IMG/VR virus record: IMGVR_UViG_3300036770_008729
Location: 217,115-281,114 of that record
Reading direction: 5' to 3' (one strand)
Length of the DNA: 64,000 nucleotides
Under the pieces are notes generated by a model. That model made no database searches. It was not told the DNA's origin and saw only the letters and a program-made list of their open reading frames with translations. The translations under genes were made by a program, and so were the position numbers. Shown here piece after piece: positions 26,584-46,947 of this stretch. How positions within the stretch are numbered: position 1 is the stretch's first letter; each line of letters begins with the position of its first letter.

Positions 26584-26696
26584 TAGTCAGGACAGGAATC
26601 GAACCTGCATGTGGGCCTTGTGTGTATTTCAACTATACTGCGGGTTTATCCACTCCGTTTAACTATTCGGTGCGTTTACCATTTCGCTACCTGACT
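26584..26696 (-). ncRNA. tRNA-shelled RNA copy 1
   Basis: AGTCAGG/CCTGACT acceptor, D arm, TTCGATT T loop, no canonical anticodon arm. Confidence 0.7.
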
Positions 26697-26700
26697 ATTT

Positions 26701-26778
26701 GAGGATGAGAAGCCCTCTGTGTTGGTAGTAACTCAACTATCTACATTTACTCATCTCCTTTCTCAAGGGAACAACACA
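26701..26778 (-). ncRNA. Repeated kissing-loop RNA, copy 1
   Basis: TGTGTTG/CAACACA helix; TGAGAA and TTCTCA complementary loops. Confidence 0.6.
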
Positions 26779-26862
26779 AAAAATTAGAGTTGTTTCGGGA
26801 GCTTCACCCGCCTTCGAATATACTTGTATCTCTCAGTTAAGAGTCAATACGAGCTTTTTACT

Positions 26863-27234
26863 TTACAACTCAAATAGTATATTATTTAATTTCATTTCTC
26901 TTATTTTTTCATTTAAGTAAGGTCTTTTAGAAAGCATTGACCATACTGGTCCATAATTGTTAATTAGTGGTTTTGTATGGATTGTGATATCAGATATATT
27001 TAATGTGTAGTCCATTTTTACATAGCCATATCTTTTATCTGCTTTTGCAACACCGGTAGATTCTACTCTGATAAATTCATCAGATATGTTAATAATGTTA
27101 TATTCCCACATATCACCAGCTTCTTCATATCCAGAGTCGTTAGGTATAAACAACCTAAATTGGACTATTGGATCATAAACAAATCCTAGACTGGCAAATA
27201 TATCAATCAGGTCTTTAAGTATTTTATTTTTCAT
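26863..27234 (-). CDS. Hypothetical protein with C-terminal tag
   Basis: IREMKLNNIL. Confidence 0.6.
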   Translation of the reverse strand: MKNKILKDLIDIFASLGFVYDPIVQFRLFIPNDSGYEEAGDMWEYNIINISDEFIRVESTGVAKADKRYGYVKMDYTLNISDITIHTKPLINNYGPVWSMLSKRPYLNEKIREMKLNNILFEL

Positions 27235-27343
27235 AAATTATTAAAACCAATATAAGCAATTATTATTACTAGTATCATAAGGATTAAACATCCATTATCT
27301 TCTGCACCAATTGGGTCGTTATCTAAATTATCATTCATAAATG

Positions 27344-27449
27344 TAGTCAGGACAGGACTCGAACCTATAATCTGAATAACCTATATCATCTTGATTTATT
27401 ACCAATGATATTTTGTATTCACGCTTTAACCCAATTTCGCCACCTGACT
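27344..27449 (-). ncRNA. tRNA-shelled RNA copy 2
   Basis: Same shell; one long hairpin TGAATA/TATTCA, ATATCAT/ATGATAT. Confidence 0.7.
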
Positions 27450-27455
27450 AATTAA

Positions 27456-27595
27456 AATATGAAGGCATATCGGTCGTTCCCAAGTTTGAATGATTAACCC
27501 CTGCCATACTCTTTGACTCGCTAAAGTCATACCATTTGAGATGTTAATCCTTGTCTGATTGGACTATACGTAACTCATCCACTCAGCTTCATATT
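27456..27595 (-). ncRNA. Stem-closed multibranch RNA (~140 nt)
   Basis: 9-bp terminal IR AATATGAAG/CTTCATATT; internal GATTAAC/GTTAATC, TGACT/AGTCA. Confidence 0.55.
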
Positions 27596-27598
27596 GTG

Positions 27599-27769
27599 TA
27601 GTCAGGACAGGACTTGAACCTGTATGTTTAGTTTTTACACTTTCACTTTTGATCAGATACTTGTGAAGGATGTTAATCAGACTTCGGTGAGATCAAATCA
27701 CCTACACATCTACTCTAAACTTAACCTACCCTTTAGGATTTTCACGTCTACTAATTCCGTCACCTGACT
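27599..27769 (-). ncRNA. tRNA-shelled RNA copy 3 (longest)
   Basis: Same shell; insert closed by GTTTAG/CTAAAC. Confidence 0.7.
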
Positions 27770-27775
27770 ATATTT

Positions 27776-27866
27776 GAGGATGAGAAGTCCTCTGTGTTGT
27801 AGAAGATTACACATCTATTCTTCTCTTTGCATTTCAGTTTCATTCCTTTCTCAAGGGAACAACACA
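27776..27866 (-). ncRNA. Repeated kissing-loop RNA, copy 2
   Basis: Conserved ends, variable middle relative to 26701-26778. Confidence 0.6.
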
Positions 27867-27874
27867 ATATTTTA

Positions 27875-28089
27875 TAAACAACTACCGCCTTCTAAGTTGG
27901 GTGTTTGTATAGGCCCAAACCCCTATACTCCATCCTTTACATAATTTTTCAATGTATCTATAAACACATTAACCTAAACCACCCACATCTTAGAAATGTG
28001 AGGTAACTCTTCCTACTCTGACATGATTAATAATGACCGTTGATAATCATTAATAGAGTCAATATTTAGTGTTAATCAGTAGTTGTTTA
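27875..28089 (-). ncRNA. Stem-closed RNA (~215 nt) with possible pseudoknot
   Basis: 11-bp terminal IR TAAACAACTAC/GTAGTTGTTTA; several internal helices. Confidence 0.6.
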
Positions 28090-28109
28090 ATATTTCAAAG
28101 AACTATTTG

Positions 28110-28231
28110 TAGTCAGGACAGGATTCGAACCTGTAAGGTAACATTCGGTTTCAAGACTCTCCTCTATACCGATCAGAGGATGTAGTTACCACTTTACTCG
28201 TCTAATGCGTCTACCATTCCGCCACCTGACT
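28110..28231 (-). ncRNA. tRNA-shelled RNA copy 4
   Basis: Leu-like D arm GCGGAATGGTAGACGC; insert closed by GGTAAC/GTTACC. Confidence 0.7.
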
Positions 28232-28236
28232 ATGAA

Positions 28237-28308
28237 ATACCGATGCCTTTACTTTCACGAGGACTTGCGTGTCTTCTTAACATTACTGTCTTAGGACCCC
28301 ATCGGTAT
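28237..28308 (-). ncRNA. Repeated conserved-core RNA, copy 1
   Basis: 9-bp closing helix; core shared with 40994-41064. Confidence 0.6.
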
Positions 28309-28312
28309 ATTA

Positions 28313-28539
28313 TGAATCAATCAAGAGCACTTATCTTTATGTTCAGAAGGTCATTCTCTATTCCACAAATTAATTTTACAGATGGTAGTACTTTTACAAA
28401 AACTTTTGCGTGTTTTATGCTCGGACTTATACACGTTATCAGCCATTAAAAAAGCAGGCCTATCGTAAACACTTACTCAAAGGATGGACATCAAGGAGCC
28501 TAATCCCCAATGAATTGGGTTTAACCAGTGATTGATTCA
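28313..28539 (-). ncRNA. Stem-closed RNA (~227 nt)
   Basis: 11-bp terminal IR TGAATCAATCA/TGATTGATTCA. Confidence 0.5.
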
Positions 28540-28560
28540 ATATATTCAAAGAACTATTTG

Positions 28561-28636
28561 TCGTTAGGGTAGGACTCGAACCTACAATCTTTCGGGATTT
28601 TCACCCGAACGCTCTATCAAATTGAGCCACCTAACT
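28561..28636 (-). tRNA. Atypical tRNA (Phe-like, enlarged anticodon arm)
   Basis: Cloverleaf; TTCGGG-TGAAAAT-CCCGAA arm; A1:G72 mismatch; D loop lacks GG. Confidence 0.55.
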
Positions 28637-28642
28637 ATAATA

Positions 28643-28674
28643 CAAAGATAATAATAATTTTTATTATGACCAAA
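28643..28674 (-). promoter_or_regulatory. Bacteroidota sigma-70-type promoter driving the ncRNA array
   Basis: TTTG-N20-TATCTTTG. Confidence 0.75.
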
Positions 28675-28725
28675 TTTATTCTGCTTTTAAACAATACAAA
28701 AAAACGTAGCGGATTTTTGTATTGT

Positions 28726-29526
28726 TTAAATTGGTAGATTTACTTTGGATAATATTTGGTTCGAAACATGAGTGTAAATTTCAGTAGTTTTTACATTTGA
28801 GTGACCTAATATTTTCTGAATTACTCTTAAATCAGTACCATTTTCCAATAGATTTGTTGCACAACTATGTCTCAATTGGTGAATGTGATATTTTTCACCC
28901 AAATATTTTTTAACAATTTGATTACAGCTACCAGAACTATATTGTAAACTATTTTGACCATTGAAAAGGTATTCTTTTGGTCTATATTCTTTAAAATATT
29001 CTCTAAGTAATTCTAATATTTTCTGGGATAGGGGTAAGACTCTATCTTTTCTACCTTTAGCATTTTTAATATGAATAATCATTCTTTTGGAATCGATATC
29101 TTCAATTTTAAGGTTAATTACTTCCGATACTCTTAATCCGACTGAATAAGTTAAAGATAATATCGTTTTATGTTTAAGATTAGTAATTTTAGATAATTGT
29201 TCTTTAATGTAATCACCATCAATAACCTGTGGTAACTTCTTCTCAGATTTGGGTCTTTTGAAACTAACCTTATCATATTTCTTATTAAGTCCGAATTTGT
29301 AGAGGAAACGGATTGCGTTAATAACCTGATTTTGTTGTGAAACAGAAGTAAAACTATAAGTATCTAAATATGATTGAAAATCATTAGATGTGAGTCTAGT
29401 TGGTGAAATTTTTATTGTAGCTAAAAATTGATTAATATAATGGAGATAGGATTTTATTGTCCTATCTGAGTAATTTAAATACTTCAATTTTTGATTACAA
29501 ATTTCGTAATAATCTGTTTTTTTCAT
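28726..29526 (-). CDS. Tyrosine recombinase (IntI/XerD-like, SAM-like N-terminus)
   Basis: GLRVSE, KGRKDR, HQLRH, LGH, IYTH. Confidence 0.95.
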   Translation of the reverse strand: MKKTDYYEICNQKLKYLNYSDRTIKSYLHYINQFLATIKISPTRLTSNDFQSYLDTYSFTSVSQQNQVINAIRFLYKFGLNKKYDKVSFKRPKSEKKLPQVIDGDYIKEQLSKITNLKHKTILSLTYSVGLRVSEVINLKIEDIDSKRMIIHIKNAKGRKDRVLPLSQKILELLREYFKEYRPKEYLFNGQNSLQYSSGSCNQIVKKYLGEKYHIHQLRHSCATNLLENGTDLRVIQKILGHSNVKTTEIYTHVSNQILSKVNLPI

Positions 29527-29585
29527 ATGTGAAATATATATGAAATAAGAAAAAAAGTTTAATTATAGATATAATCTAGTTAGTG

Positions 29586-29843
29586 TCAATATTGCCTATG
29601 CTTATTTACTACCTCTTTACCGCAGCTTTTACACGTCCACTTACCATACTGCTCGCCATTAACCCCAGTTCGGCTAACGCATTGGCAATACTTTTTGCTT
29701 CGCCCACTAACATCGTGTATGCGTAAGGCTGCTTCGTACCCTGCAATAAAATCTCGTACTTTTTGTTCGTACCATCCTGCATCGTCTATCTTATATCTGA
29801 AACTTTCAGCATATAATTCAGCTTGTTTTTTTATATCTTCCAT
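29586..29843 (-). CDS. Cassette gene, C-terminal zinc ribbon
   Basis: CQC...CKSC; starts inside attC-like site 1. Confidence 0.6.
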   Translation of the reverse strand: MEDIKKQAELYAESFRYKIDDAGWYEQKVRDFIAGYEAALRIHDVSGRSKKYCQCVSRTGVNGEQYGKWTCKSCGKEVVNKHRQY

Positions 29844-29892
29844 TCTAATTAAATTTATCGTTAATAAATCGCCCTACGCATACACGCAGCCG

Positions 29893-30168
29893 TTATACGC
29901 AATTATATAACACCCAATCGTGAATAAATTTTATTGAAGAATTAAAAGCATCAATCCAATCAGGATAACATCCACAATCTTCTTCTACCCATTCACCATT
30001 TTGCTTCCAATAAACATATCCACGCCAACATATGCCAACATCTTCCAGCTTATATCCATCAGCAAGAACTTCAATAAAAATTCCTTTATCTGAATAACTG
30101 CGTATAACAGCAGGTATATTCAATTGCGGTTTCTGTGCTTCATTCAAGTTTTGTTCTTCTATGCTCAT
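29893..30168 (-). CDS. Cassette gene, hypothetical
   Basis: Start reassigned to MSIEEQ inside site 2; stop supplied by GTTA box. Confidence 0.6.
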   Translation of the reverse strand: MSIEEQNLNEAQKPQLNIPAVIRSYSDKGIFIEVLADGYKLEDVGICWRGYVYWKQNGEWVEEDCGCYPDWIDAFNSSIKFIHDWVLYNCV

Positions 30169-30301
30169 TTGTTCTAAATTTAAGTTTTGTAATTTTAAGT
30201 CCGCAACTAAATATACCTGCAAAACGTTATGTGTAAGTGTTCCGTTCATCTTACTAATCAACATTTTGGTTGAAAATTTTAAAAGAAAAATCCCACACAC
30301 A

Positions 30302-31132
30302 TTAAATGATTTTAATATATTTTGGTGGTATATTATCATATGTGAAAAAACCACCCTTGAATCTCAAATCTTTATATAAAGATAATCCTTTGAAGTTTTC
30401 TATTCTTAAATTAACATATTCACCACCTTTATCACCAACTAACTCTTGTTTTATTGAAGACATCCATTCTTCATTAGGCGATAAATAAATTCTCTCAGGA
30501 TAAAAACTTCTAGTATTTTTTGTTTTTGGTATTAAACCATATTTCATTATCTTATCTAAATTTTTGGAGTCGGTTGTGTGATAAAGATATTCACCTTCAA
30601 AATTAACTTTGTCATCATAATTTGGTTCTATCATTATGGATATTCTATCACTAGATATTAAGGTTTTTTCTATATCATTTTTATCAGTTAGTTTTTCACC
30701 TGGTTTAAGATTTACGACAGATATAAAATATCCCATATTATCTATTAATGATATAAGACCAAGTGATAATTCCTTATTATTAAAATCTGTAAATATTGAT
30801 ATATCACCATAATTAAATTCACTTATTTGTTTTTCTAAATCCGAGATAGTCTTGTCTATATCAACCCCTCCTTTAATTAGACTTTTTGTTAATGAATCAT
30901 TTTTGTCTTTATAGCCTTTTAACATTCTATTCATCGTAAATTTATCGGTGATGATTTGATAATATGGTGAATTCACATCTTCGCCAAAATTAGATTTTTT
31001 ATTTAGACCATTTCCAATAAAGAAATTATCTAATTTTTTTATAACAATATCAAGTTTATCTGATTTTAGTGTTTCGTTAAGTAAATTAAATTTTCTAAAA
31101 CTGTTTATATATTTTCTCATTTCCTTACTCAT
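30302..31132 (-). CDS. Cassette gene with ADP-ribosyltransferase/Tpt1-like C-terminal domain
   Basis: YLYHTT...IMKYGLIP...RIYLS...IPPKYI. Confidence 0.55.
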   Translation of the reverse strand: MSKEMRKYINSFRKFNLLNETLKSDKLDIVIKKLDNFFIGNGLNKKSNFGEDVNSPYYQIITDKFTMNRMLKGYKDKNDSLTKSLIKGGVDIDKTISDLEKQISEFNYGDISIFTDFNNKELSLGLISLIDNMGYFISVVNLKPGEKLTDKNDIEKTLISSDRISIMIEPNYDDKVNFEGEYLYHTTDSKNLDKIMKYGLIPKTKNTRSFYPERIYLSPNEEWMSSIKQELVGDKGGEYVNLRIENFKGLSLYKDLRFKGGFFTYDNIPPKYIKII

Positions 31133-31306
31133 AGTATTTCTTTTATATATAAATATTGAGAATTAAAACTTCCACCCTTCTTTTTCTTTTAAAATTTTTG
31201 TTTAGTTCTCCGAATGAAATTTAGTAGTTAATAACCCACACCTACACATAACAAATGATAAACAACATTAAAACGATTGTTTATCATTAGTCGTTAGAAG
31301 CAATGC

Positions 31307-32211
31307 CTAATCAAGCGTTACTTCACTTTTATAAAGTCCGATGTTAAATCGGTATGTTTCGTTCTTTGAGAATGATACAAAAATACTTCCTCCGTATTGG
31401 TTTATATTTGTTGGTTCTCTGCCAAGCGATACATTTTTATAAGTTTCTGCTAAGTATTTTTGTACTTCCATAGGCACAGCTTCTAACAGCAAGTTAGCGT
31501 TATTGCCTATTTCGTTGGTATTCGATGTTTCATTTTTCATATTAAAATTTGTTTAAAATTGATACTGTATTATTTCAAATGTCGGCAACAAACGCCAACT
31601 TGCGAATCGTTATATGCAATTAAAAATGGGCAACGACCATCGTTTTGCATTTGGAAATTTCTTTTTATACATTGCTTTTACTCGAAGTTTTACGAGTTCT
31701 TTAATCTGCTCATCATTCATCCATTGGCTTGCTCTGTCATTCAGCCTTGTTTCTACAATTATGTCTGCTTCTTCGGATAGTAGGAATGGGTGTCCGTGTT
31801 TGAACTCGTAAAACCATCTTTTCAACTGCCAATTTTTAACAGCATATAACAAAGTATTGCCAATAGTGGCAGTTTGTGAGTTGTTTGAAGTTTGTTGCAT
31901 CTTATTTAGTTTATTGGTTAATCAAAATTTATCTCTTTTAATGCCACCATCGGCAATACTTGGCACGTTATAAAACAGTTTAATTATAGTATTTTACCAC
32001 ACTTACTGCACACATAACATTGTCCTTTTTCAATAGCATTATGGTTACAAACCGATTTTATAACATCGGCTTGTTGCAATTTTTTTACTAACTTATCCAG
32101 TTCACTATAAGCTAAGTGTTCCAGTTGAGTTTTGTCGTGTTCACCAAAGTAGTTTCTAATTAACTTTAGGTCTTTAATTTCCTGTTCTGTTATTTCAATT
32201 TCTATTTTCAT
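31307..32211 (-). CDS. Three cassette genes (31307-31540, 31610-31900, 31984-32211)
   Basis: Each starts inside its attC-like loop. Confidence 0.6.
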
Positions 32212-32263
32212 TATTATTTAGTGTTGCAAATCCGTAAAAAAACTGACAACAAGCCGCAAACAG

Positions 32264-32551
32264 TTATAAAACATTTAATGAATCGTCAGTAATATCATCC
32301 ATCACTAAACAAGACTCATTATTAGTTTCGTGATAATTTAAAAATCCTTTTGGGTATTCAAATATTGTTGTTAATAATTTCATCCCTTCACCACAATGAG
32401 AACATTTTAATTCACCACGATATGTGTGTTCGTATTCAAAACTAATTGAGCGTTGTTCCTTATCTGTTCCTATGTGTTTCATTTCAATAAAATGTTCTTC
32501 TCTACATTCTAAACATCTTACTCTAACCAAAGGATTTTTAAATTCTACCAT
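32264..32551 (-). CDS. Cassette gene, zinc-binding protein
   Basis: CLEC...CSHC. Confidence 0.65.
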   Translation of the reverse strand: MVEFKNPLVRVRCLECREEHFIEMKHIGTDKEQRSISFEYEHTYRGELKCSHCGEGMKLLTTIFEYPKGFLNYHETNNESCLVMDDITDDSLNVL

Positions 32552-32678
32552 AAATAAACGTTTTATAACAAGGTATATATGAAATACCCTATTAAGGTTT
32601 CTACTAATTTTTAAATTAATCGTTAGGGTACTTCATATATACCCAACCGTTATGTATAATAAATTAAAAAATATGAGT

Positions 32679-34125
32679 TTATTCATTTTCCTTAATCCAT
32701 TTATCAAAAAGCTTTTGTGGATTTTTATTATAAAGTCTCCATAATGTAAATCTCATCAAATCACTTTGGTTTAAACACTTCGGATGTTCCTTAACTATCA
32801 AATCAGCTTTCTGTTCATCAGTTAAACAATGTCTCCACCAAGCAAGTGCTTCTTCGGTTGCTGGTGTTTCTTTAGCTATGTGAGATGTATTCGATTTGAA
32901 TCCATACCCTAATTGTGGAAATGCTGCCATATTTTTATTAAGTTGTATATTTTTTAATTTACTGATACATAACAACAAATATAAGAAATAAGTTTCTATA
33001 AACAAAAAAAGGAGTAATAAACTTACTCCTCATATTTGAGACCGTTATATTCAATGTTTTAAAACTTATTGTCTTTCCATTTGATAATATCATTTACAAT
33101 TTCCTGATTTCTATCCAATACTCGTTTCGCTTCCGTAAAATCTTCTTGTGATACCAGTTTAGGATTTATACATTCCACTCTCGTTTCTCCTTCTCCAATA
33201 GGAATCCAATATGAAATGATATTGTCTTCTTCCTTCGGGGAGAATTTTCTTACAACATCTTCCATAACTTTTGAAACATCATTACGATCTATATTACCTA
33301 CATAGATGTAATAAATTAAAATAATTTTTTCCATAATTTTTTATTTTTTTATTCTTTTAATTTGTATAAGTTTTAAAAAACTAAATATAACAAATGATAA
33401 ACAAAATTAAAACGATGTTTTAATTGTTTTAGAAACCCGTTCAACAAAATAATCTATTCGACTTTCTATTTCGTTATCACTTGCCATTGGTTTAAATTTT
33501 AAACCATGTTGTTGATAGTGTGATTTTACATCACAAGCACCATATGCTTCTTCAATCATAAATTGTTTAACAAGTTCCTTGAACTCATTTGTTTTTACCA
33601 TTTCTTCTTTTTTCATATGTTAAAATAATTTTTTCCATAAACATAACAAAGTATAAACAAAATAAAACCTAACAGAATAGTGCTAAGTCCCATCGTTATA
33701 AATATTCTTTTTATTCTATTGTAGTTGAAAAAGGGGTCTTTCTCAACTGATTTATAAGCGTATCGTATTTCTAATACACCAATTAAAATTGCCATTATTG
33801 TTAATATCCACATATTGTTAGGTTTTACTTCGTTTATAATAATTCATTAGTGAGAATAAAGAAGAATATAGATTTTATCATCTTCTGGTAGTTTTATATA
33901 ACCAACATCTTCCATAATAGAAATACCAGATTTTATTTTATCTTGTAAATTTGCTATTTCAGATAAAGATGATAAAATCTTCTTGTATTTTTTACCACCA
34001 ATTTCAATCGTTTCTTCTTTACTCTCACTAACATCAGATATACTCGAAGAAGTATCCTTCGAGAGTTCACTATTCAAGTTTTCTTCCGACTCGTTAAATC
34101 TCCTTATGTGTTTTAAATCTTTCAT
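32679..34125 (-). CDS. Five cassette-region genes (32679-~32930, 33059-33334, 33407-33616, 33613-33813, 33847-34125)
   Basis: Small ORFs between or inside attC-like sites; last carries MKDLKHIRRFNES tag. Confidence 0.6.
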
Positions 34126-34487
34126 CTTCGTTTATTAGTTTTTAGTATATATTAAAAAGAAAACCTAAATATATCTGAGGAACGTTATGCGTAATAAAAG
34201 ACTATATTTTATCTTTAAACTCTTTTTTGAGAATATCTATTTTATCTTGTATTTTAGAAGCTCTTTCTAAATCTCCTCTTCTCTCATATCTATTCTTAAT
34301 ATCCTGTAACATGCTGAGGTACTCATTAGAAGTTCATTAGTTGATCCTTTTTTTGATTCTGGATGAGAACAAGATTGGAGTCACAAAATGAGGGCACTTA
34401 TTACAATTAGTTTTTTCATGTTTTAATTAGATAACAAATTTAAGGATTTTTTTTAATATATAGTATAACGTAAAAAAAATAAACATT

Positions 34488-35009
34488 ATGAAATACTTAA
34501 AATTATTTGAAAATTTTCGATTAAATGAAGAGATTGATATAGATTCAGGAGCCGATAATAAAATGAGAGAACAAAGTCCTAAAATGGTTGAACAAGCCAA
34601 GAAGATTCAAAGTACTTTAAAAGGATTAAAGTTTACATCAAAAGATGTATCAGACAATGACGAAAAAGATAAACTTTGGAAAGAAGCCATTCAAAAAGTA
34701 AAAGAAAAAGAGTGTAAAGAAGCTTATGGCATTATGAAATGGTCAGGTAGTATTTGTCAAAGTTTCAGTATAATAGCACCAGCTAGTGCAATTGAAATTT
34801 TACGTCAACCCCTATATGGATGGGCTAGAAAAATATACTACAGAGAAACACCTGGTGAGTTTTGCACGTTAGAAGTTTATAACAACCCAGGAGGTAAAGG
34901 CGATTCAACATCTCTCTATATGCAATCAGACGGTGAAGTTTTATTTCAGTGGGATGACTATGAAAATGTAGCAAAAGGAAAATTAAAAGATAAAGGAAAA
35001 TCTTTATAA
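34488..35009 (+). CDS. N-terminal-tag family protein
   Basis: MKYLKLFENFRLNEE; TAATATATA 34454-34462; terminator 35012-35039. Confidence 0.65.
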   Translation: MKYLKLFENFRLNEEIDIDSGADNKMREQSPKMVEQAKKIQSTLKGLKFTSKDVSDNDEKDKLWKEAIQKVKEKECKEAYGIMKWSGSICQSFSIIAPASAIEILRQPLYGWARKIYYRETPGEFCTLEVYNNPGGKGDSTSLYMQSDGEVLFQWDDYENVAKGKLKDKGKSL

Positions 35010-35083
35010 ATAAAAACCCTCTTTAAGAGGGTTTTTTTATTCCTAAATTTGTAAATAGAAATTTATTTCTTATCTTTGCCACT

Positions 35084-35464
35084 ATGATAGATCCTAATTA
35101 TTTACAACAGGAAATATTAAAGATAAATGATAAATACCCAAATATAAACTATGGTGGGTGTGGCACATTCTCCTATCATTTACATAAGACACTAAAAGAT
35201 AAGTATAATATAGATACTGAGATTTGTTATATGCCGGGTCCTCGATGTGCTATTGAATATGATATTAAATTCACACATATCTTACTTAAATGGGAAGGTC
35301 TTCTAATAGATAATACGGGTTTTTATTTGAGTAGTGAGCATCAGGATTTAGAAAGTTTATCTCCTGATAAGTTAGAAGAAATGATAAATATTCCCCAGTT
35401 ATGGAATAATGTATTTGATATGAGTACAAAAGATGAACTCATAAAAGAAATATGGTCTATATAA
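35084..35464 (+). CDS. Small protein with possible Cys-His-Asp papain/transglutaminase-like triad
   Basis: GGCGTFS...FTHILL...LIDNTG. Confidence 0.45.
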   Translation: MIDPNYLQQEILKINDKYPNINYGGCGTFSYHLHKTLKDKYNIDTEICYMPGPRCAIEYDIKFTHILLKWEGLLIDNTGFYLSSEHQDLESLSPDKLEEMINIPQLWNNVFDMSTKDELIKEIWSI

Positions 35465-35551
35465 TCTGAATAATATGGATTCTGAGTCAAATAGAAATAA
35501 TAAAACCCTTTCAAAAAGGGTTTTATTTATAAAGAATATAATTATCCATAG

Positions 35552-35839
35552 TTAATTTCTTGGGGGATAAATACCTTCTATACAAATATAACTTTCTATA
35601 TAAGGTGTTCCATCTGGTAAGTGTTCACCTTGTGAGTAATAATTACCATCAGCTTTTCTTTTTCTTAAATCAGGTAAAACAAACGACACTCTACCATCAC
35701 CACCAAAAGTAGTTCCTAAAAGTGAAAAAAGAGCTTGATTTTCATTAATGAGCATATACTGACCATGACATGCCACCCATCCTCTGATAGGATAGTTAAA
35801 TCCAAATTGTAAAATTGATCCTAAATAACTTTCGTCCAT
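35552..35839 (-). CDS. Phage tail collar domain protein
   Basis: GWVACHGQ...ALFSLLGTTFGGDG...LPDLR. Confidence 0.9.
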   Translation of the reverse strand: MDESYLGSILQFGFNYPIRGWVACHGQYMLINENQALFSLLGTTFGGDGRVSFVLPDLRKRKADGNYYSQGEHLPDGTPYIESYICIEGIYPPRN

Positions 35840-35951
35840 AATAAATATTTTGTTTTATAAGGTGTGAATATCACACGATTGAGTTATATATTACAAACTT
35901 TATCTTTGATCGTAAAAAAATTGGCATTGTAATCTGAATAATAATTTAAAT

Positions 35952-36398
35952 CTAATCATTCATAAATAACTCCCAAACATCAGGTCGAAACTCCCTAAAG
36001 TATTCTAATTCATTATTAGTAGTCTCAACCTCACCTTTATTTCTATTCTCTTCATACTGAGCATGATGTGTAAGTTCATGAATAATTGAAGAACAAGTAA
36101 TATCCCATCTACCTACTTCATTAACTCTATTTCTCACCATACCTAATGATGGTCTCCAATATAAGATAGCGTCTTCTCTATTAGTTGGAATTTGAATAAC
36201 AGGTCTCTCATACTTAGAATCTTTATGGTCATTTCGATAATATCTTGCTCTTGACAAAGATCCACTGAATATAATATCAACTCCAGAGAAATCTACACGT
36301 GGGTATTTGTTTTTAACAAAACATAAGGCTTTGTCTAATATTTCGGATAAGTTCTCCTTATCGTATTTACCTACTGACTTTCTGATTGTTATTGTCAT
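35952..36398 (-). CDS. HEXXH zinc metallopeptidase-like protein
   Basis: IIHELTHHAQ...GEVE. Confidence 0.65.
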   Translation of the reverse strand: MTITIRKSVGKYDKENLSEILDKALCFVKNKYPRVDFSGVDIIFSGSLSRARYYRNDHKDSKYERPVIQIPTNREDAILYWRPSLGMVRNRVNEVGRWDITCSSIIHELTHHAQYEENRNKGEVETTNNELEYFREFRPDVWELFMND

Positions 36399-36649
36399 TT
36401 ATTTATATTTAGAATACAAAAGTAGTAAAAATGAGACAATTGACAAATAAATCTTTAAGATTATCTTTATGATGTATATACGTGCCGCCCTCGAGTTACC
36501 CCGTGGTTTTACCCCCGCCCTTCATACTTCAATAAACTATCGGCAAATACTTTATCTTTTCTGACATAACAAATATAAGGACTATTTTTGTAATTTTCAA
36601 AATTTTAATCTTTTTTTAATATATAGTATATAAAAATTAACATCACAAT

Positions 36650-37279
36650 ATGAAATATTTGAAACTGTTTGATAATTTCAATCTAGTAAAGGAATCGGCA
36701 GACTATGAGCCAGAAGGCGGTCCAGAAAAAAATCTTTTTATTTATGGTAATAAAACTCCGAATAATAAAATGATAATGCATACCTACTTCACCTACAAAA
36801 AGAAAAAATTTTCAGAAAATGAAAATTTGTTTAAAAAATTGATGGATAAAAAAAATTATGGAGCTGCTCAGAATTGGAAATGGGCATATGAGGATGGTGG
36901 TTTTTATGAATATATCGAAGATGATCACGGTCATATTCCAATGATTAGAATACTCAATAAAGATGGAATGCCATCAACAATTGCGGATGATGGAATCGAT
37001 TTAGTTGAAGGTTGGATATCCAGCTCTGTGTTCGCCGGTCATCCATTAAATCCACAAAACTTTAAAGATTTGACTAAACGGAATTCCAGTCCAAGCGGTG
37101 CGTTTATATGTGTGTACGAATTGGAAAAGTTCATCACCTATAACAAAATTACCCACCCAGATGGATTCAAAAAAGCTCTTAGAGCATCTGGATATGGATT
37201 CGTTGAAAATAAAAATATAGAATTTATACACGATCCACAAATTGACCCATCCACAGGATACAAAAAGTGGTCACCATAA
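36650..37279 (+). CDS. N-terminal-tag family protein
   Basis: MKYLKLFDNF; TAATATATA 36617-36625. Confidence 0.65.
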   Translation: MKYLKLFDNFNLVKESADYEPEGGPEKNLFIYGNKTPNNKMIMHTYFTYKKKKFSENENLFKKLMDKKNYGAAQNWKWAYEDGGFYEYIEDDHGHIPMIRILNKDGMPSTIADDGIDLVEGWISSSVFAGHPLNPQNFKDLTKRNSSPSGAFICVYELEKFITYNKITHPDGFKKALRASGYGFVENKNIEFIHDPQIDPSTGYKKWSP

Positions 37280-37309
37280 AATAAAAAATAAGGCAAAAAG
37301 ACAATAATA

Positions 37310-37339
37310 AAAAAAACCAGTCAATTGACTGGTTTTTTT
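37310..37339. terminator. Bidirectional terminator
   Basis: A-tract CCAGTCAATTGACTGG T-tract between convergent genes. Confidence 0.8.
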
Positions 37340-37357
37340 GTTATACAACATAGTGAC

Positions 37358-38530
37358 TTAAAAATATAAAGATAATCTCCCAAGTCTATACAACCAATTT
37401 CTTTTTGTAGAAACAATACCCCAGTTTTCAAATATATCCTGTCTGGTTGTCAAACCAGCTTCATTTGTTTCTTTCCCAGTATGGTCATCTCTAAATAAGA
37501 AATTAGTTAAAGATTCAGGTGCAGTACCACCATTGAAGTCTTGTAATTCATATCTATCAAATTTCCATCCAACCCACTTTTCATCATCAGTAAACCAATT
37601 GTGAACATAAGTATCAGTATTATATGGATCTCCAAAATTAGTAACTGGATTTACAGGTCCTCTAAATATAGTATAAGCCTTTTTCGGTCTATCTGAATAA
37701 GCTGGTTGTTCACCCTCATAAAAACAAAAATAATGTTCTAAAGGTCCCATCCAATATCCAAATAAATACTGCCATCCAGTTGTTCCACCATCAGGAGTTG
37801 GCCTGTCATTTTGCCATTGTGGTCCGTTCCAGTCATGACTATCATTCCATCTGGTATAAAATTTATCCCATACATTAGCACTATCAATATGTTTGATAGT
37901 CCATTTAGAAGGTAACATTTTTTTAGTCATCATATATTTAGATTTACCAGCTATAAAAATAGCAGCACTATCATAAGCAACATTTCCCTCTTCTGGTATC
38001 CAATCTATATTAGCCAAATCACTAATAGAAGCTGAATTACCATTGTAGGTATAAACCACCGACCAGTATTGTTCTATATTATCATTCCAAGTATCAATTG
38101 ATAATACAGTAGTATCAAAGGCGCCTTTTACTCCATCCCATACCACATTATAAGTATCTTGTAAATGGTCTGGTTTATTTTCTTTTTCGGTCCATTTATC
38201 TACAAGACCGGTAAGGAGATAAGAAACAACTTTACCACCTAATGTTCCAAAATAAGGAAATTCAATGTCTGCTATTTTTTCAAATCCATATTTCAATAGA
38301 TCGATTAGGTAATCAGAGGTGGTTTTAATGGGTGCGTTAGCAGCAACACTTATATTCTGTGTGATGTTTGCATATTCTAACTCTGATTTATCTTGGCAGT
38401 GATTGATAAATTTAGAAAGTTTTTGTAGTTGTAGATGTACTTTTTGCACTGTTGGGTCATCATATACCTTTTCTCCATTTACTATTTTATAAGTAAATTG
38501 GGGTGTTGTGGTTGTTTTTTTCTTAGGCAT
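37358..38530 (-). CDS. Hypothetical Trp-rich protein
   Basis: 390 aa ORF; no family recognised. Confidence 0.6.
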   Translation of the reverse strand: MPKKKTTTTPQFTYKIVNGEKVYDDPTVQKVHLQLQKLSKFINHCQDKSELEYANITQNISVAANAPIKTTSDYLIDLLKYGFEKIADIEFPYFGTLGGKVVSYLLTGLVDKWTEKENKPDHLQDTYNVVWDGVKGAFDTTVLSIDTWNDNIEQYWSVVYTYNGNSASISDLANIDWIPEEGNVAYDSAAIFIAGKSKYMMTKKMLPSKWTIKHIDSANVWDKFYTRWNDSHDWNGPQWQNDRPTPDGGTTGWQYLFGYWMGPLEHYFCFYEGEQPAYSDRPKKAYTIFRGPVNPVTNFGDPYNTDTYVHNWFTDDEKWVGWKFDRYELQDFNGGTAPESLTNFLFRDDHTGKETNEAGLTTRQDIFENWGIVSTKRNWLYRLGRLSLYF

Positions 38531-38630
38531 AAAATCTATCTTTTTTTTGTATATATCTTAATTCTTAATTTATACTGCACAATTCCAGATTTTAATTATT
38601 ATATATAAGTAGTAAAATTTAATCAAACAT

Positions 38631-40698
38631 ATGAAATACATTAAAACATTCGAGAGTTATGATGAATTTCCTGATATGTTTAATAACACACTGATGAGAG
38701 GAGTCAAAACTGATAAAGATGAATATATCGATGATCCTAAGTTGAGAAATATTAACACCGGTGCTTCATCTGATAAAAACTATTTAGAATTCCTGAAGAA
38801 CTATATAAAATTTGGCATTCCTGATCCAACTAAATCAATTCATATGTTTTTTAGACCAAATAGAGATTCAATTGATATGATAAGTTTTTATGGAAATTCA
38901 TATAGAGTAATTCCACAAGAGGGTACCGTATTCGGATTTAATAGAGAGATGAGAAATGGTGGATTGGGTAGTACATGGTTTTATCCACAAAGAACAATAA
39001 AAAAATACTTAGGTAAAGATCTAAATATAGATTTAGAATCAATGAGTAATGATGAGATTACTGAATATCAAAAAATGCTAATTGATAGTGGTGTAGTTGG
39101 TATATTGACTTATGAAGAATTACTTAAAATGTCTACGGAAAAAGGTGAACCTTTACAGGTTTGGACTGAATCACCTTGTTTACATAAAAAAATTTAATCA
39201 AACATATGAAATACATTAAAACATTCGAGAGTTATAATCAATCAGAGAAAGTTGATGAAAATCTTAAATCATTCATCGCTGGTACTCTATTATCATTATC
39301 ATCATTGTTTCCTGGTAAAGCAGATGCTTTTATAGGAGGTGGTGTTTCAGGTGGTCATGTTGTAGCAACAACTAACCATTCAATTAATACTCAAGAGATA
39401 AAGGATGATAGTCAACAGATAAAAGATGATATAACAGATCCAGTATTGAAAGATATAAAAAAATCAATAGATGATGGTATACAATCAAAGGCTGAAATTG
39501 ATAGTATTATAACTAAACTTAAAGCATATGCAGATAAAAACAATTCTCATAGTGATGTTAAAAAAGTATTGGAAGATTTATCTAAAATAGATTTCAATGG
39601 AGATAAAGAAGTAGTAAAAGGTGACTTACTGAAAATAATTATTAAGTTAAATGAAATGCAAAAAAGTGGATCCTTTTCTATTAATGATTTAATGGTCATT
39701 GCTATTTTATTACTTTTTTTAACACTTTTCATTAAATTGATGAATGAAAATGATTAATGGGTAAATGAATATGAAACGAATTAAGAAATTTAATGAAAAT
39801 AATCTGGATTTAGATTATGATTATATCTATAATTGTTTTGCAGAACTTATAGACGATAATAAAGCTTCTATAAGAAATTTTCAAAATGACCATCAAAGAT
39901 ATATTACCATAGATTTAAAGATGAAACCTTTTTCATCAGTTGAGGTAGGCACCAGTTCGAGATTTAATAGAACTCCCGTAGGACCGACTGAAAAGATTAT
40001 CAATTCTAAAATATTTGATTATATAGATGGTGTTAAATACAACTATGATTTACTTAAAGAAGTTGAAGTTGGATTGACGAGATTATCAGAAGAATATCCA
40101 GAGTATATAACTAACTTTGAGATATTTGATAATGTAAACTCAATTCATATTAATATATTTAATAGTTGGAGGACTTACATTAAAGAATAGAGTCTAATTT
40201 CATTTTTCTAAATTCTGATAGCGAAAACAACCCACGCATTTCATCTTCATTTAAGGTAATTGAATATCTACCCTTTTTAGAATTTTGTTCATCTATAATA
40301 CTTTTCATAGCATTCTTTATTAAAGTTAATTAATATTTTTTTTAATATATACATTATAAAATTATATTAAAAATATGAAACATATTAAAAAATTCAATGA
40401 AGGATATCTTAGTGTTTATAATGCTAAACCTATGGAAATAAACGATGCATTTGTAGGGGTTTTGTCAGCATTGGCTACTTTAGAGACTTCTTTAGAAAAA
40501 AGCGAGTTTAAACAAGGAATTCATGATCCAAAAAAAGGAATTGAAGTTCAAAGAACTAAAGAAGAATTCCTTAAGGCTGTCGAAGACATTGCAAAAGAAG
40601 TTGACTCACTTAAATCAGAATATGAAGGATCTCTTGGTAGAGGTGGTACTATGAATGTAGTCGGTAAAGGTGGTGTTTCTCAAACAAGAAGTTATTAA
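38631..40698 (+). CDS. Four N-terminal-tag family proteins (38631-39197, 39206-39757, 39765-40190, 40375-40698)
   Basis: MKYIKTFESY x2, MKRIKKFNE, MKHIKKFNE. Confidence 0.65.
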
Positions 40699-40763
40699 AA
40701 AACTAAATACCGATATCTAAAACCCCAGAATATCTGGGGTTTTGTTTTTTAATTTTAGATAAA

Positions 40764-40892
40764 AAGTCAGGACAGGAATCGAACCTGTGCTGTCATAAAA
40801 GGACTTCGGCCTCGGGTTACATCACGTATAGTTATTTCTAACACCCCGATACTATGCGACGGCTTAAGCGTTTTCCACTCCGCCACCTGACT
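40764..40892 (-). ncRNA. tRNA-shelled RNA copy 5
   Basis: Same AGTCAGG shell; insert with TCGGG/CCCGA helix. Confidence 0.7.
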
Positions 40893-40906
40893 ATTTATAT
40901 TTACAG

Positions 40907-40978
40907 TAGCCCGTACGAGAATCGAACTCGTGTCTACACCGTGAAAGGGTGCCGTCCTAACCCCTAGACGAACGGGCC
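40907..40978 (-). tRNA. tRNA-Glu(TTC)
   Basis: Cloverleaf; near copy of 44884-44955. Confidence 0.9.
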
Positions 40979-40993
40979 AAAATTGTTATTTAA

Positions 40994-41064
40994 TATAGAC
41001 GCCTTTACTTTCACGAGGTCTTGCATATCTTCTTCAGGTATTATCCCTTAGGACTCCGCCTACA
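40994..41064 (-). ncRNA. Repeated conserved-core RNA, copy 2
   Basis: Closing helix TAGGCG/CGTCTA; promoter TTTG-N20-TATGTTTG at 41078-41109. Confidence 0.6.
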
Positions 41065-45487: not shown

Positions 45488-45496
45488 CAAATAAAT

Positions 45497-45575
45497 GCCC
45501 CAATAACCGAGGTTGCCTTCTAAGCAACTAATCGTAACGGAGTGGAAGATATAGGTTCGAATCCTATTTGGGGTA
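45497..45575 (+). tRNA. tRNA-Arg(TCT), non-canonical (no local D arm)
   Basis: GTTGC-CTTCTAA-GCAAC; acceptor GCCCCAA/TTGGGGT. Confidence 0.7.
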
Positions 45576-46812: not shown

Positions 46813-46947
46813 GGGGATGTAGCTCAGTGGTAGAGTTTTAAAATATCTCTTTTGAGGTTTTACCTCTTGAAAAGGAGTGTTGATTAAAAGAGTTACTTCG
46901 TTTGAATTGAAATCAAAAGGTCGTGGGTTCGAATCCCACCATCCCCG
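46813..46947 (+). tRNA. tRNA (TGA anticodon) with ~60-nt hairpin inserted between D and anticodon arms
   Basis: GGGGATG/CATCCCC, G73; TTTGA-ATTGAAA-TCAAA. Confidence 0.65.

Follow-up and report, generated by a model that had tools for sequence, protein, structure and literature searches.

What are five RNA genes that keep the outer frame of a leucine tRNA but contain unrelated sequence where the decoding arm should be? The genes are carried by a jumbo phage of freshwater Bacteroidota and lie in a 64,000-nucleotide stretch of IMG/VR record IMGVR_UViG_3300036770_008729 (positions 217,115 to 281,114), referred to here as the window. The original prediction, made from sequence alone, was that these elements share constant acceptor, D, and T arms with unrelated, individually folded cargo in place of the anticodon arm, and that they may be natural tRNA scaffolds, decoys for tRNA-targeting defenses, or RNase P/Z punctuation marks that could possibly be charged with leucine.

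Identification of the tRNA-like elements

The observation was confirmed, with all five copies found on the minus strand at the expected positions (the predicted coordinates included the discriminator base). The elements and their neighbors in the window were as follows:

26585-26696 (-), chassis RNA copy 1, 112 nt, A73 at 26584; its cargo (family c1) is a 3-bp hairpin with a conserved 10-nt loop, then a GUGG/CCAC-closed arm at the variable-arm position; 62.2 bits with our chassis model
27345-27449 (-), chassis RNA copy 2, 105 nt; the anticodon stem UGAAU/AUUCA is kept (Rfam alignment) and its loop is replaced by a 39-nt extended hairpin; 59.6 bits
27600-27769 (-), chassis RNA copy 3, 170 nt, the longest, with a 121-nt cargo and a D loop without G18G19; 51.2 bits
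28111-28231 (-), chassis RNA copy 4, 121 nt, with a GGUAAC/GUUACC arm closing 2 nt before the T stem; 66.7 bits
40765-40892 (-), chassis RNA copy 5, 128 nt, with U73 instead of A73 and a G15-C48 Levitt pair instead of A15-U48, the last gene of a unit made of leader B, tRNA-Glu, and the chassis RNA; 51.5 bits
28562-28636 (-), a sixth, diverged relative of the chassis with acceptor AGUUAGG/CCUAAC, T stem GUAGG/CCUAC, and a 9-nt anticodon loop GUGAAAAUC; 40.9 bits
26699-26779 (-), leader A RNA motif directly 5' of copy 1, with P1 GUGUUGU/ACAACAC, a hairpin with loop UUGAGAA, a variable hairpin, and a 3' hairpin with loop UUCUCA (kissing loops)
27774-27867 (-), leader A RNA motif directly 5' of copy 3
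28240-28305 (-), leader B RNA motif directly 5' of copy 4, with P1 CCGAUG/CAUCGG and conserved GUCCUAAG ... CCUCGUGAAAGUAAAGGC
40996-41062 (-), leader B RNA motif 5' of tRNA-Glu, with TATGTTTG (Bacteroidota-type -7 box) just upstream
40906-40978 (-), ordinary tRNA-Glu(UUC), 13 nt upstream of copy 5 on the same strand
40717-40744 (-), intrinsic terminator-like hairpin AAAACCCCAGA-UAU-UCUGGGGUUUU, about 20 nt after copy 5
27889-28077 (-), 'mid' RNA between copy 4 and leader A, probably a separate small RNA of the same island and not part of the chassis family

The five copies share an identical acceptor stem, a near-identical T arm, and a tRNA-Leu-type D arm, but have unrelated middles of 55-121 nt. 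All five begin AGTCAGGT and end (A/G)(C/T)AGGTTCRANTCCTGTCCTGACT, although copy 3 lacks the G18G19 pair in its D loop (AATTAGTAG). The 13-mer TCCTGTCCTGACT occurs exactly five times in the window, and with up to 2 mismatches allowed, the 7 observed matches were reached in 0 of 100 shuffles, which gave a mean of 0.86.

ARAGORN called none of the five copies a tRNA, whereas it called the diverged relative, which has compensatory changes in the T stem and acceptor stem, 'tRNA-Phe(aaa)'. The Rfam tRNA model reached the gathering score for three copies (42.5, 36.7, and 35.3 bits), but only by skipping 17, 69, or 39 nt in the anticodon region; copy 1 (42.5 bits) required a 17-nt local insert plus a 40-nt insertion and copy 5 (36.7 bits) a 69-nt insert. 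In contrast, a purpose-built chassis model scored the five copies at 51-67 bits and the ordinary tRNAs of the window at 32.5 bits or less.

The closing helices originally named (GTGG/CCAC, TGAATA/TATTCA, GTTTAG/CTAAAC, and GGTAAC/GTTACC) are present in the sequence, but the description of the cargo as replacing the anticodon arm is inexact for three of the five copies. In copies 1, 3, and 4 the large helix closes 2 nt before the T stem, which is the position of a class II variable arm, and a short vestigial hairpin or stretch sits where the anticodon arm would be; only copy 2 is a plain replacement or extension of the anticodon arm. Thermodynamically, only the copy 2 cargo folded better than shuffles (z = -2.2), with the other four near 0, so the claim that each cargo is structured rests on comparative evidence and not on energy.

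We next asked whether these could be decoding tRNAs with introns or unusual loops, or decaying tRNA-Leu pseudogenes. tRNA-Leu genes with group I introns are known, one group I intron is present in a related locus (L012; L numbers denote loci of the comparison set), and a few short members of the family look like normal tRNAs, for example a 70-nt Lys(UUU)-like one. However, splicing of the inserts to give ordinary tRNAs, which had been named beforehand as an outcome that would count against the scaffold reading, found no support: no group I intron signal was detected in the window, the inserts are below group I size, and no anticodon stem halves flank them. Across the wider family described below, ARAGORN gave no call for 135 of 174 elements, and the anticodons of the other 39 were scattered or non-triplet. 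Pseudogenes would not keep an invariant, covarying chassis or conserved cargo families, and we consider this explanation very unlikely.

Distribution and conservation of the chassis

The elements belong to a large and apparently undescribed family. The same frame occurs in hundreds of uncultured phages, with several copies (5-7) per genome and a different insert almost every time; the 3' half alone matched at least 120 IMG/VR contigs. We collected 174 distinct elements with lengths running continuously from 68 to 190 nt, and 172 distinct middles fell into 158 sequence clusters with no shared motif.

Conservation of the chassis was that of an RNA structure. In the alignment, 98% of cells were paired and 13 of 15 pairs showed double changes, which 0 of 500 shuffles reached; rare chassis variants were compensatory, with such changes in all three stems. 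Core tertiary positions were kept, with U8 in 169 of 174 elements, A14 in 156, A15-U48 in 136 with G15-C48 in 7, and U(-1) in 141, together with G18G19. A73 was present in 158 of 174 (91%) and absent from 16.

These conserved positions coincide with the set of LeuRS identity elements in E. coli, namely A73, A15-U48, G18G19, A20a, and the D/T-loop contacts, and the variable parts are those that LeuRS ignores. Minimal tRNA-Leu lacking both the anticodon and variable arms is still leucylated (PMC9976931). On paper this strengthens the suggestion that the RNAs can be charged, and they may be non-decoding leucine carriers in which the Leu-RNA serves as a donor for an aminoacyl-transferase, as a sink for LeuRS or EF-Tu, or to protect the 3' end, with the cargo directing the carrier to its partner. 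This reading is purely inferential and we regard it as unlikely: the identity rules come from E. coli and not Bacteroidota, copy 5 has U73 and copy 3 lacks G18G19, no transferase was linked to the genes, and the resemblance could be simple inheritance from a tRNA-Leu ancestor.

Genomic context and presence in RNA libraries

The elements appear to be handled like tRNAs. They were on the same strand as neighboring tRNAs in 230 of 230 cases and shared the N73-C-A/T-A trailer of the phages' ordinary tRNAs. Some have their own Bacteroidota-type promoter, with TAnnTTTG lying exactly 4 nt upstream in 8 cases, and copy 5 is followed by the terminator-like hairpin listed above.

The leader motifs are also conserved. 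Leader A occurs twice in the window and in 10 loci, and its loop-loop complementarity covaries in L019 (TGATAA/TTATCA). Leader B of copy 4 is 89% identical over 74 nt to L072, where it also precedes a chassis RNA, and the second window copy, before tRNA-Glu, has a covarying P1. Because leader A lies exactly between tRNA-like elements, the original suggestion of punctuation marks is partly borne out.

Metatranscriptome contigs carried chassis pieces with other cargos, one at depth 115, and seven RNA runs held 31-mers of the copy 1/leader A stretch, although the RNA contigs run past the chassis ends and could be precursors or contaminating DNA. The mid RNA was matched by 163-188-nt contigs with 0-3 mismatches in three metatranscriptome runs, and conserved blocks of it were found in L111 between two tRNAs.

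Variation and conservation of the cargo

Comparison of near-identical phages revealed wholesale replacement of the cargo. L078 and L041 have flanks 95-96% identical and chassis halves 100% identical, but unrelated cargos of 109 and 122 nt, and L021, L105, L084, and L032 behave likewise. Because the alignment between related phages breaks exactly inside the element, the conserved halves may instead work mainly at the DNA level, as short homology linkers or as integration or recombination sites that promote mosaicism, with the RNA incidental. In L021 versus L105 one flank is 90% identical and the other unrelated, a tyrosine recombinase lies next to the window island, and a Hymenobacter isolate carries a host tRNA-like 5' part fused in the T loop to the chassis 3' end. 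In contrast, the compensatory changes in all three stems, the covarying Levitt pair, the kept tertiary nucleotides, U at -1, the tRNA-type trailer, the strict co-orientation, the promoters, and the presence in RNA libraries all point to selection on an RNA, and no recombinase family was linked across loci. We therefore consider it very doubtful that the halves work mainly at the DNA level with the RNA incidental.

At least one cargo appears to be under selection. The c1 cargo of copy 1 had seven distinct homologues in 10 contigs with unrelated flanks, at about 88% identity, with double compensatory changes in two cargo pairs and conserved loops, although this was the only cargo family in which covariation could be tested. 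L014 and L065 also share a loop with a fully compensated stem. Over the family as a whole, however, cargo folding was only mildly better than shuffles (mean z = -0.6).

Some observations fit less well with a role for the cargo. A scaffold does not need a nearly invariant chassis sequence, yet the sequence is nearly invariant across phages with unrelated flanks, even in loci found through the cargo alone. Minimal members of 68-72 nt have only a tetraloop-capped stem, so the chassis may work without cargo. No partner protein was linked to the genes, and no cargo target was found in the same loci. The chassis itself may be the functional part and the middle a permissive region, with abundant tRNA-Leu look-alikes acting as decoys or sponges for something that recognizes the acceptor/T-arm/elbow or the 3' end of tRNAs, such as a host tRNA-modifying or tRNA-cleaving defense toxin, LeuRS, RNase P, or the CCA-adding enzyme. 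The several copies per genome and the weak thermodynamic structure of most cargos are consistent with this, and the window also encodes a PNK-like kinase and a Tpt1/ART-fold protein, which are weak hints of RNA-end chemistry. Against it, the c1 cargo is conserved in unrelated contexts, cargo is replaced wholesale rather than drifting, and one phage keeps five different cargos rather than five copies of one element. A chassis-only decoy seems to us unlikely but is the strongest alternative, and a decoy for tRNA-targeting defenses in particular is neither supported nor excluded.

Proposed role of the chassis RNAs

The original interpretation was partly supported, and its core idea of natural tRNA scaffolds carrying unrelated RNA cargo is the reading that the comparative data support best, although we hold it as about as likely as not. 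In this view, the genes encode a family of phage non-coding RNAs built on one tRNA-Leu-derived chassis consisting of a 7-bp acceptor stem, a Leu-type D arm, a T arm, and the core tertiary nucleotides. The chassis would fold into the tRNA L-shape, so that the RNA would be cut out of its transcript, trimmed, and probably given CCA by the ordinary tRNA maturation enzymes, and would be stable. The decoding arm is vestigial or gone, and in its place, at the anticodon-arm position, the variable-arm position, or occasionally in the D loop, sits an RNA module that differs from gene to gene. The module would be the specific, working part, most likely binding a host or phage protein or RNA, and modules would be exchanged between phages by recombination within the two constant ~25-nt chassis halves, so that closely related phages carry different modules at the same locus. 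Our data show the chassis and its covariation, the diversity and cassette-like replacement of cargo, the conservation and covariation of one cargo family, the co-orientation and shared trailer with tRNAs, the promoter motifs, and the presence in RNA libraries, whereas processing by RNase P and 3' enzymes, the mature ends, CCA addition, leucylation, stability, the function and targets of the modules, and recombination as the exchange mechanism are inferred.

Comparison with described systems

The design logic is identical to that of the engineered tRNA scaffold for recombinant RNA expression, described in method papers, in which the acceptor, D, and T arms are kept so that cellular enzymes process and stabilize the chimera and the cargo is placed in the anticodon arm. 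That is a laboratory construct, whereas the arrangement here is natural, Leu-type, often uses the variable-arm position, and is a diversified gene family. Integron gene cassettes offer an analogy for the exchange pattern only, with constant short ends, a hypervariable interior, and replacement at one locus between close relatives, but we found no attC core sites and no linked integron integrase across loci, and the constant ends here are halves of a folded RNA gene.

Phage T4 species 1 and species 2 RNAs (rnaC and rnaD) are stable small RNAs of 139 and 119 nt encoded in a phage tRNA cluster, co-oriented with the tRNAs, with a function listed only as 'small, stable RNA'. rnaC ends in a canonical T arm (CCGGG-UUCGAAU-CCCGG) plus an acceptor-like 3' strand, but there is no sequence relation, the chassis model gave rnaC only 19 bits, and no Leu-type D arm is evident in it. 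T4 has single genes and not a family with a constant chassis and interchangeable middles.

The topology is the same as that of tmRNA, with a 5' acceptor strand, a large non-tRNA insert between the D-loop region and the T arm, and then the T arm and 3' acceptor strand; tmRNA is processed and charged like a tRNA, and tmRNAs are encoded in related phage tRNA islands (L111 and L012). The chassis, however, has U3-A70 and not the G3-U70 alanine identity, has a full D stem, lacks a tag reading frame and pseudoknot ring, and is much shorter (68-190 nt against more than 300). ARAGORN and Rfam tmRNA searches were negative for these elements, and the phage tmRNA in L111 has a different acceptor and encodes CCA.

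Murine gammaherpesvirus TMERs, MALAT1 mascRNA, and plant mitochondrial t-elements use tRNA-like folds to recruit RNase P or RNase Z and so define the ends of neighboring RNAs, which resembles the placement of leader A in these phages. In those eukaryotic systems the cargo lies outside the tRNA-like fold, whereas here it is nested inside it. Bacterial Y RNAs (YrlA), also found in phages, have a module that mimics tRNA D/T arms joined to a protein-binding helix at the anticodon-stem position, but in YrlA the RNA ends lie in the Ro-binding helix and the acceptor is closed by a loop, whereas here the ends are in the acceptor stem. There was no Rfam YrlA hit in the window, although weak sub-threshold hits occur next to a chassis RNA in L037.

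GOLLD and ROOL RNAs are large (400-800 nt) RNAs with a conserved fold that assemble into cages, and they have no tRNA chassis. They share the same genomic habitat of phage tRNA islands and lake metagenomes and have no known function; their association with tRNA islands is noted in the literature. In L037, a GOLLD RNA (299 bits) lies 1.4 kb from a chassis RNA.

Chassis elements in the window

The window is phage-like, with about 30% G+C, and encodes a virion protein (phrog_1645), a tyrosine recombinase and more than 20 tRNAs. Two of its cargo sequences recur exactly in one IMG/VR contig of 281 kb, so that the window comes from a jumbo phage, and its DNA is found in subsurface and freshwater metagenomes. 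Five elements, in which a constant tRNA-like frame (the chassis) encloses a variable middle (the cargo), were located as follows:

26585-26696, minus strand, chassis RNA copy 1
27345-27449, minus strand, chassis RNA copy 2
27600-27769, minus strand, chassis RNA copy 3
28111-28231, minus strand, chassis RNA copy 4
40765-40892, minus strand, chassis RNA copy 5

Each element begins with AGTCAGGT, continues with a tRNA-Leu-type D arm (GGCGGAATGGTAGACGC or a close variant) and ends in (A/G)(C/T)AGG-TTCRANT-CCTGT-CCTGACT, so that all five have the acceptor stem AGUCAGG/CCUGACU, a 3-bp D stem and a 5-bp T stem closing UUCRANU. The 13-mer TCCTGTCCTGACT occurs exactly five times in the window, whereas shuffled sequences gave an average of 0.86 matches even when two mismatches were allowed. 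The middles, of 55-121 nt, share nothing with each other. The observation in the original prediction, of five RNAs with constant acceptor, D and T arms and unrelated middles, is thus confirmed, and its interpretation is partly supported.

The elements do not have the anticodon arm of a decoding tRNA, with 5 bp and a 7-nt loop presenting a triplet. ARAGORN called none of the five, and the Rfam tRNA model (RF00005) reached threshold for three of them only by jumping over local inserts of 17, 39 or 69 nt in the anticodon region. Their lengths of 105-170 nt also lie outside the range of about 70-95 nt for tRNAs. The original prediction had described the cargo as replacing the anticodon arm, but in copies 1, 3 and 4 the large helix closes two bases before the T stem, where the long variable arm of a class II tRNA sits, and a short vestigial hairpin or stretch occupies the anticodon-arm position. 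Only copy 2 keeps an anticodon stem (UGAAU/AUUCA), the loop of which is replaced by a 39-nt extended hairpin. Each middle had also been described as folding into its own structure, but by folding energy only the copy 2 cargo was better than shuffled sequences (z = -2.2), with the other four near zero. A sixth, diverged relative of the chassis lies next to the recombinase at 28562-28636 (minus strand), with compensatory changes in the T stem and acceptor stem, a 9-nt anticodon loop (GUGAAAAUC) and an A1-G72 mismatch, and is labelled Phe(aaa) by ARAGORN. Two further weak tRNA-like signals that ARAGORN did not call lie inside the main tRNA array at 46874-46947 (plus strand) and 45489-45569 (plus strand), with 31.3 bits for the Rfam tRNA model and 21.8 bits for the chassis model.

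Excision of the inserts to give ordinary tRNAs, which had been named beforehand as an outcome that would overturn the prediction, found no support. No group I intron (RF00028) was detected in the window, although the same model found one in L012 (one of the related loci carrying chassis elements); the inserts of 55-121 nt are shorter than a group I catalytic core of about 200 nt or more, and anticodon-stem halves were absent in four of the five copies. The explanation that these are true or decaying tRNAs, which carries the least weight of the alternatives considered here, is contradicted by the data.

Distribution and size of the family

The 3' half of the element (GGTTCRANTCCTGTCCTGACT) matched at least 120 IMG/VR contigs. 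Among 185,579 prokaryotic genomes it matched 30 contigs, mostly freshwater MAG pieces, many of them binned as Bacteroidota, which carry complete elements, and no ordinary cellular tRNA with this 3' half that could be the object of mimicry was found. Megablast and blastn searches of 50,697 GenBank phages found nothing. Counting from AGTCAGG to CCTGACT, 174 distinct elements ranged continuously from 68 to 190 nt with a median of 102 nt, 61% being longer than 95 nt, and several contigs carried 4-7 copies. ARAGORN gave a call of any kind for only 39 of the 174, with scattered anticodons or "anticodons" of 2-4 nt; tRNA finders miss these elements or mis-call them as tRNAs with odd anticodons, which matters for phage annotation. 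We constructed a covariance model of the chassis (R1), which scored the window copies at 51-67 bits and the ordinary tRNAs of the window at 32.5 bits or less, and which also found further copies that do not match the search pattern.

Conservation of the chassis

Across 135 hits of the covariance model, 98% of cells were paired and 13 of 15 pairs showed changes on both sides, and no shuffled or slid register came close, so that the chassis is an RNA structure. Sequence variants were few and mostly compensatory, including GGTCAGG with CCTGACC, AGTCAAG with TCTTGACT, ACTCAGG with CCTGAGT, and the T stems GCAGG/CCTGC and GAGAGG/CCTCTC. Because this first sample had required the exact 3' sequence, we examined a second, unbiased sample; in loci found only through the c1 cargo (the cargo family of window copy 1), the other chassis RNAs again carried AGTCAGG/CCTGACT with at most one or two changes, usually wobble or compensatory.

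The core tertiary positions of tRNA were retained, with U8 in 169/174 elements, A14 in 156/174, A15-U48 in 136/174, its covarying alternative G15-C48 (as in window copy 5) in 7/174, and GG in the D loop in 159/174. The conserved positions of the chassis coincide with the E. coli LeuRS identity set (A73, A15-U48, G18G19, A20a and the D/T-loop tertiary contacts), in which the anticodon and variable arm are not needed, and a truncated tRNA-Leu lacking both of these arms remains chargeable (PMC9976931). A73 was present in 158/174 elements, but copy 5 has U73 and copy 3 lacks GG. By these identity rules, copies 1, 2 and 4 would be charged, and copies 3 and 5 would be charged poorly. Leucylation is therefore plausible, although this is inferred from sequence and from E. 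coli rules alone and the resemblance may simply be inherited from the ancestor. A role as a leucine carrier is the second in weight among the alternatives.

Variability of the cargo

The 172 cargos fell into 158 sequence clusters, and k-mer enrichment revealed no convincing shared motif. They were only mildly more stable than shuffled sequences (mean z = -0.6, p = 4e-10). Neither sense nor antisense matches of the cargos to their own locus or to the window were longer than those of shuffled cargos, which gives no support to an antisense or guide function. Rfam searches at gathering and at E-value thresholds, on the window and on 36 related loci, returned only tRNA hits for the elements, and no ribozyme, riboswitch, CRISPR repeat or sRNA family matched the cargos. 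Some members carry the insert in the D loop, a few contain a second T-arm-like hairpin, and the shortest members (68-72 nt) have just a tetraloop-capped stem.

The cargos are nevertheless not junk. The c1 cargo recurred as seven distinct sequences in 10 contigs whose flanks are unrelated, with about 88% identity across them, two conserved loops that both contain AUAGUURAA, and two helix pairs with double compensatory changes. Similarly, the cargos of two related loci, L014 and L065, share a loop while their stem is fully compensated.

Replacement of cargo among syntenic phages

Among syntenic phages the alignment breaks inside the element. For the loci L078 and L041, the flanks were 95-96% identical and the chassis halves 100% identical, but the cargos were unrelated, at 109 and 122 nt. 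For L021, L105, L084 and L032, the upstream flanks were 86-92% identical, the downstream flanks 83-88% identical except where L105 was involved, and the chassis halves 72-100% identical, with unrelated cargos of 116, 89, 109 and 159 nt, respectively; in L105 the downstream flank is also replaced. This is wholesale replacement rather than drift, and we infer that the constant halves are the obvious crossover points. A purely DNA-level role as a recombination linker ranks third among the alternatives.

A phage attachment site within a tRNA-like sequence would be expected to have an adjacent integrase and to occur as a single copy matching the 3' end of a host tRNA gene. In contrast, an integrase was adjacent only in the window, no integrase family was enriched over 151 loci, and there are multiple copies per genome. 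In the isolate genome of Hymenobacter montanus BT664 (L134, 6790-6890), a host-type tRNA-Arg(CCU)-like 5' three-quarters is joined within the T loop to the chassis 3' end (CCTGTCCTGACT), with CTGACTACT repeated on both sides, which could be a scar of recombination between a chassis gene and a host tRNA gene.

Expression signals

The elements lay on the same strand as neighbouring ordinary tRNAs in 230 of 230 cases, and U preceded position 1 in 81%. The trailer is N73-C-(A/T)-A, and the ordinary tRNAs of the same phages have the same trailer. In a comparison of the trailers of 292 ordinary tRNAs and 174 chassis RNAs from all related loci, the tRNA genes of these phages almost never encode CCA but have C at position 74 followed by A/T and A (CAAA, CTAA, CAAT). 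C74 was present in 169 of 174 chassis RNAs and CCA was encoded in only 4 of 174, and this may represent a shared 3'-processing signal. In the syntenic group, a Bacteroidota-type promoter box (TAnnTTTG) ends exactly 4 nt before AGTCAGG, which together with the MAG bins points to Bacteroidota hosts. Window copy 5 follows a conserved RNA motif (leader B) and tRNA-Glu, and is followed by an intrinsic-terminator-like hairpin.

Several contigs assembled from random-primed metatranscriptomes (Logan contigs) carried chassis pieces joined to other cargos, one of them a 935-nt contig at depth 115, but these contigs run beyond the chassis ends and therefore carry no information on mature ends, CCA or splicing. 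Seven RNA runs contained 31-mers of the stretch comprising copy 1 and the leader A motif.

Proposed mechanism and comparison with known RNAs

The best-supported reading is a tRNA-Leu-derived chassis that recruits the tRNA maturation machinery, gives a stable L-shaped fold, and presents an interchangeable module at the anticodon-arm or variable-arm position. In this view the module would provide specificity for a host or phage partner, and modules would move between phages by recombination in the constant halves. Whereas the chassis structure, the diversity of the cargos and their replacement between close relatives were demonstrated by the comparisons, the processing, the stability, the charging and the module function are inferences. 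This reading does not explain the near-invariant chassis sequence, suggesting an added constraint such as use as recombination arms or a sequence-specific partner. Of the alternatives, a chassis-only decoy or sponge carries the most weight.

A more far-reaching reading, which we put forward only tentatively, is that freshwater Bacteroidota phages possess a modular RNA display system, in which a single mobile tRNA-Leu chassis, possibly leucylated, is used to express, mature and stabilise hundreds of different small RNA modules. The chassis halves would double as recombination arms, so that modules would be traded between phages like cassettes under an arms race with host factors. If true, this would be a natural counterpart of the laboratory tRNA scaffold and an RNA analogue of integron cassettes, and would be of considerable interest.

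The nearest classical analogues are the T4 species 1 and 2 RNAs, which are stable RNAs in the tRNA cluster, with a genuine T arm in rnaC. They are single genes unrelated in sequence to the chassis RNAs, and the chassis model scored rnaC at 19 bits, like any T arm. The tmRNAs share the topology but none of the defining features; the ARAGORN tmRNA search and Rfam RF00023 were negative for these elements, position 3-70 is U-A rather than G-U, the length is too short, and phage tmRNAs in related loci have a different acceptor. For the Y RNA YrlA (RF02553), no hit was found in the window at an E value of 1 or less, and the topology differs, the YrlA ends lying in the Ro-binding helix. The laboratory tRNA scaffold shares the design. 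Full-text literature searches by sequence strings and by concept found no description of this family. Although tRNA-derived non-coding RNAs are themselves already known, these searches found no account of this one, with its constant frame and variable payload.

Phage tRNA islands are known to hold puzzling RNAs, among them the T4 species 1 and 2 RNAs, unexplained for about 50 years, and GOLLD and ROOL, and to these the present family adds a very large and easily recognised class with a clear architecture. It turns the question of what non-tRNA genes in tRNA clusters are for into a testable one, because payloads can be swapped, deleted or pulled down. Bacteroidota are not known to possess the classical sRNA chaperones, and if the chassis is how RNAs are matured and stabilised there, it would be a new solution to sRNA biogenesis. 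If the RNAs are charged, they would be a new class of non-decoding aminoacyl-RNAs. The cassette-like turnover between near-identical phages marks the locus as a probable arms-race determinant, and the family offers ready-made natural scaffolds and aptamer-like modules for RNA engineering.

Neighbouring genes and RNAs

To investigate whether a protein was linked to the elements, we clustered 2,327 ORFs from 151 loci, and no family was present in more than 15 loci. The most frequent were terminase, DUF932, GIY-YIG and RNase H-like proteins, which are ordinary phage genes. Two proteins flanking the RNA island of the window, which occupies 26.5-28.7 kb, gave only weak leads to RNA-end chemistry, including from PDB and atlas look-ups. 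These proteins and the other RNAs of the window are:

25182-26492, minus strand, one of the two flanking proteins
30302-31132, minus strand, the other flanking protein
26699-26779, minus strand, leader A RNA motif
27774-27867, minus strand, leader A RNA motif
28240-28305, minus strand, leader B RNA motif directly 5' of chassis copy 4
40996-41062, minus strand, leader B RNA motif directly 5' of tRNA-Glu
27889-28077, minus strand, an RNA of roughly 190 nt

One of the flanking proteins is a 436-AA AAA_33/polynucleotide-kinase-like P-loop protein, for which the C-terminal half had no assignment, and the other is a 276-AA protein with faint similarity to the RNA 2'-phosphotransferase (Tpt1)/ADP-ribosyltransferase fold (NCBIfam E = 0.003; structure TM 0.38/0.55).

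Leader A consists of a P1 helix, GUGUUGU/ACAACAC, enclosing a hairpin (loop UUGAGAA) and a variable hairpin, followed by a hairpin GAGGA-CUUCUCA-UCCUC. The two loops are complementary and covary (TGATAA/TTATCA in L019), suggesting a kissing-loop fold. Beyond its two window copies it was found in 10 other loci (L014, L019, L029, L034, L044, L064, L073, L087, L092 and L111), often lying exactly between two tRNA-like elements, so that tRNA processing would release it as a separate RNA. Leader B (GUCCUAAG ... CCUCGUGAAAGUAAAGGC) has a covarying closing helix and was also found directly 5' of a chassis RNA in the related locus L072 (4287-4360). Neither leader had an Rfam match. The RNA at 27889-28077 is the only part of the 2.6-kb island that was recovered as contigs, of 163-188 nt with 0-3 mismatches, in three aquatic metatranscriptome runs, and conserved blocks of it recur between two tRNAs in L111; it is probably an abundant small RNA, although its folding z-score is only -1.5.

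Consistent with the known habit of phage tRNA islands to harbour enigmatic RNAs, related islands also carried a GOLLD RNA (L037, 1477-1884; 299 bits), tmRNAs (including L111, 5724-6218), and a tmRNA region adjoining a group I intron (L012, 7609-8193; 98 bits), with weak YrlA-like hits beside the chassis RNA in L037.
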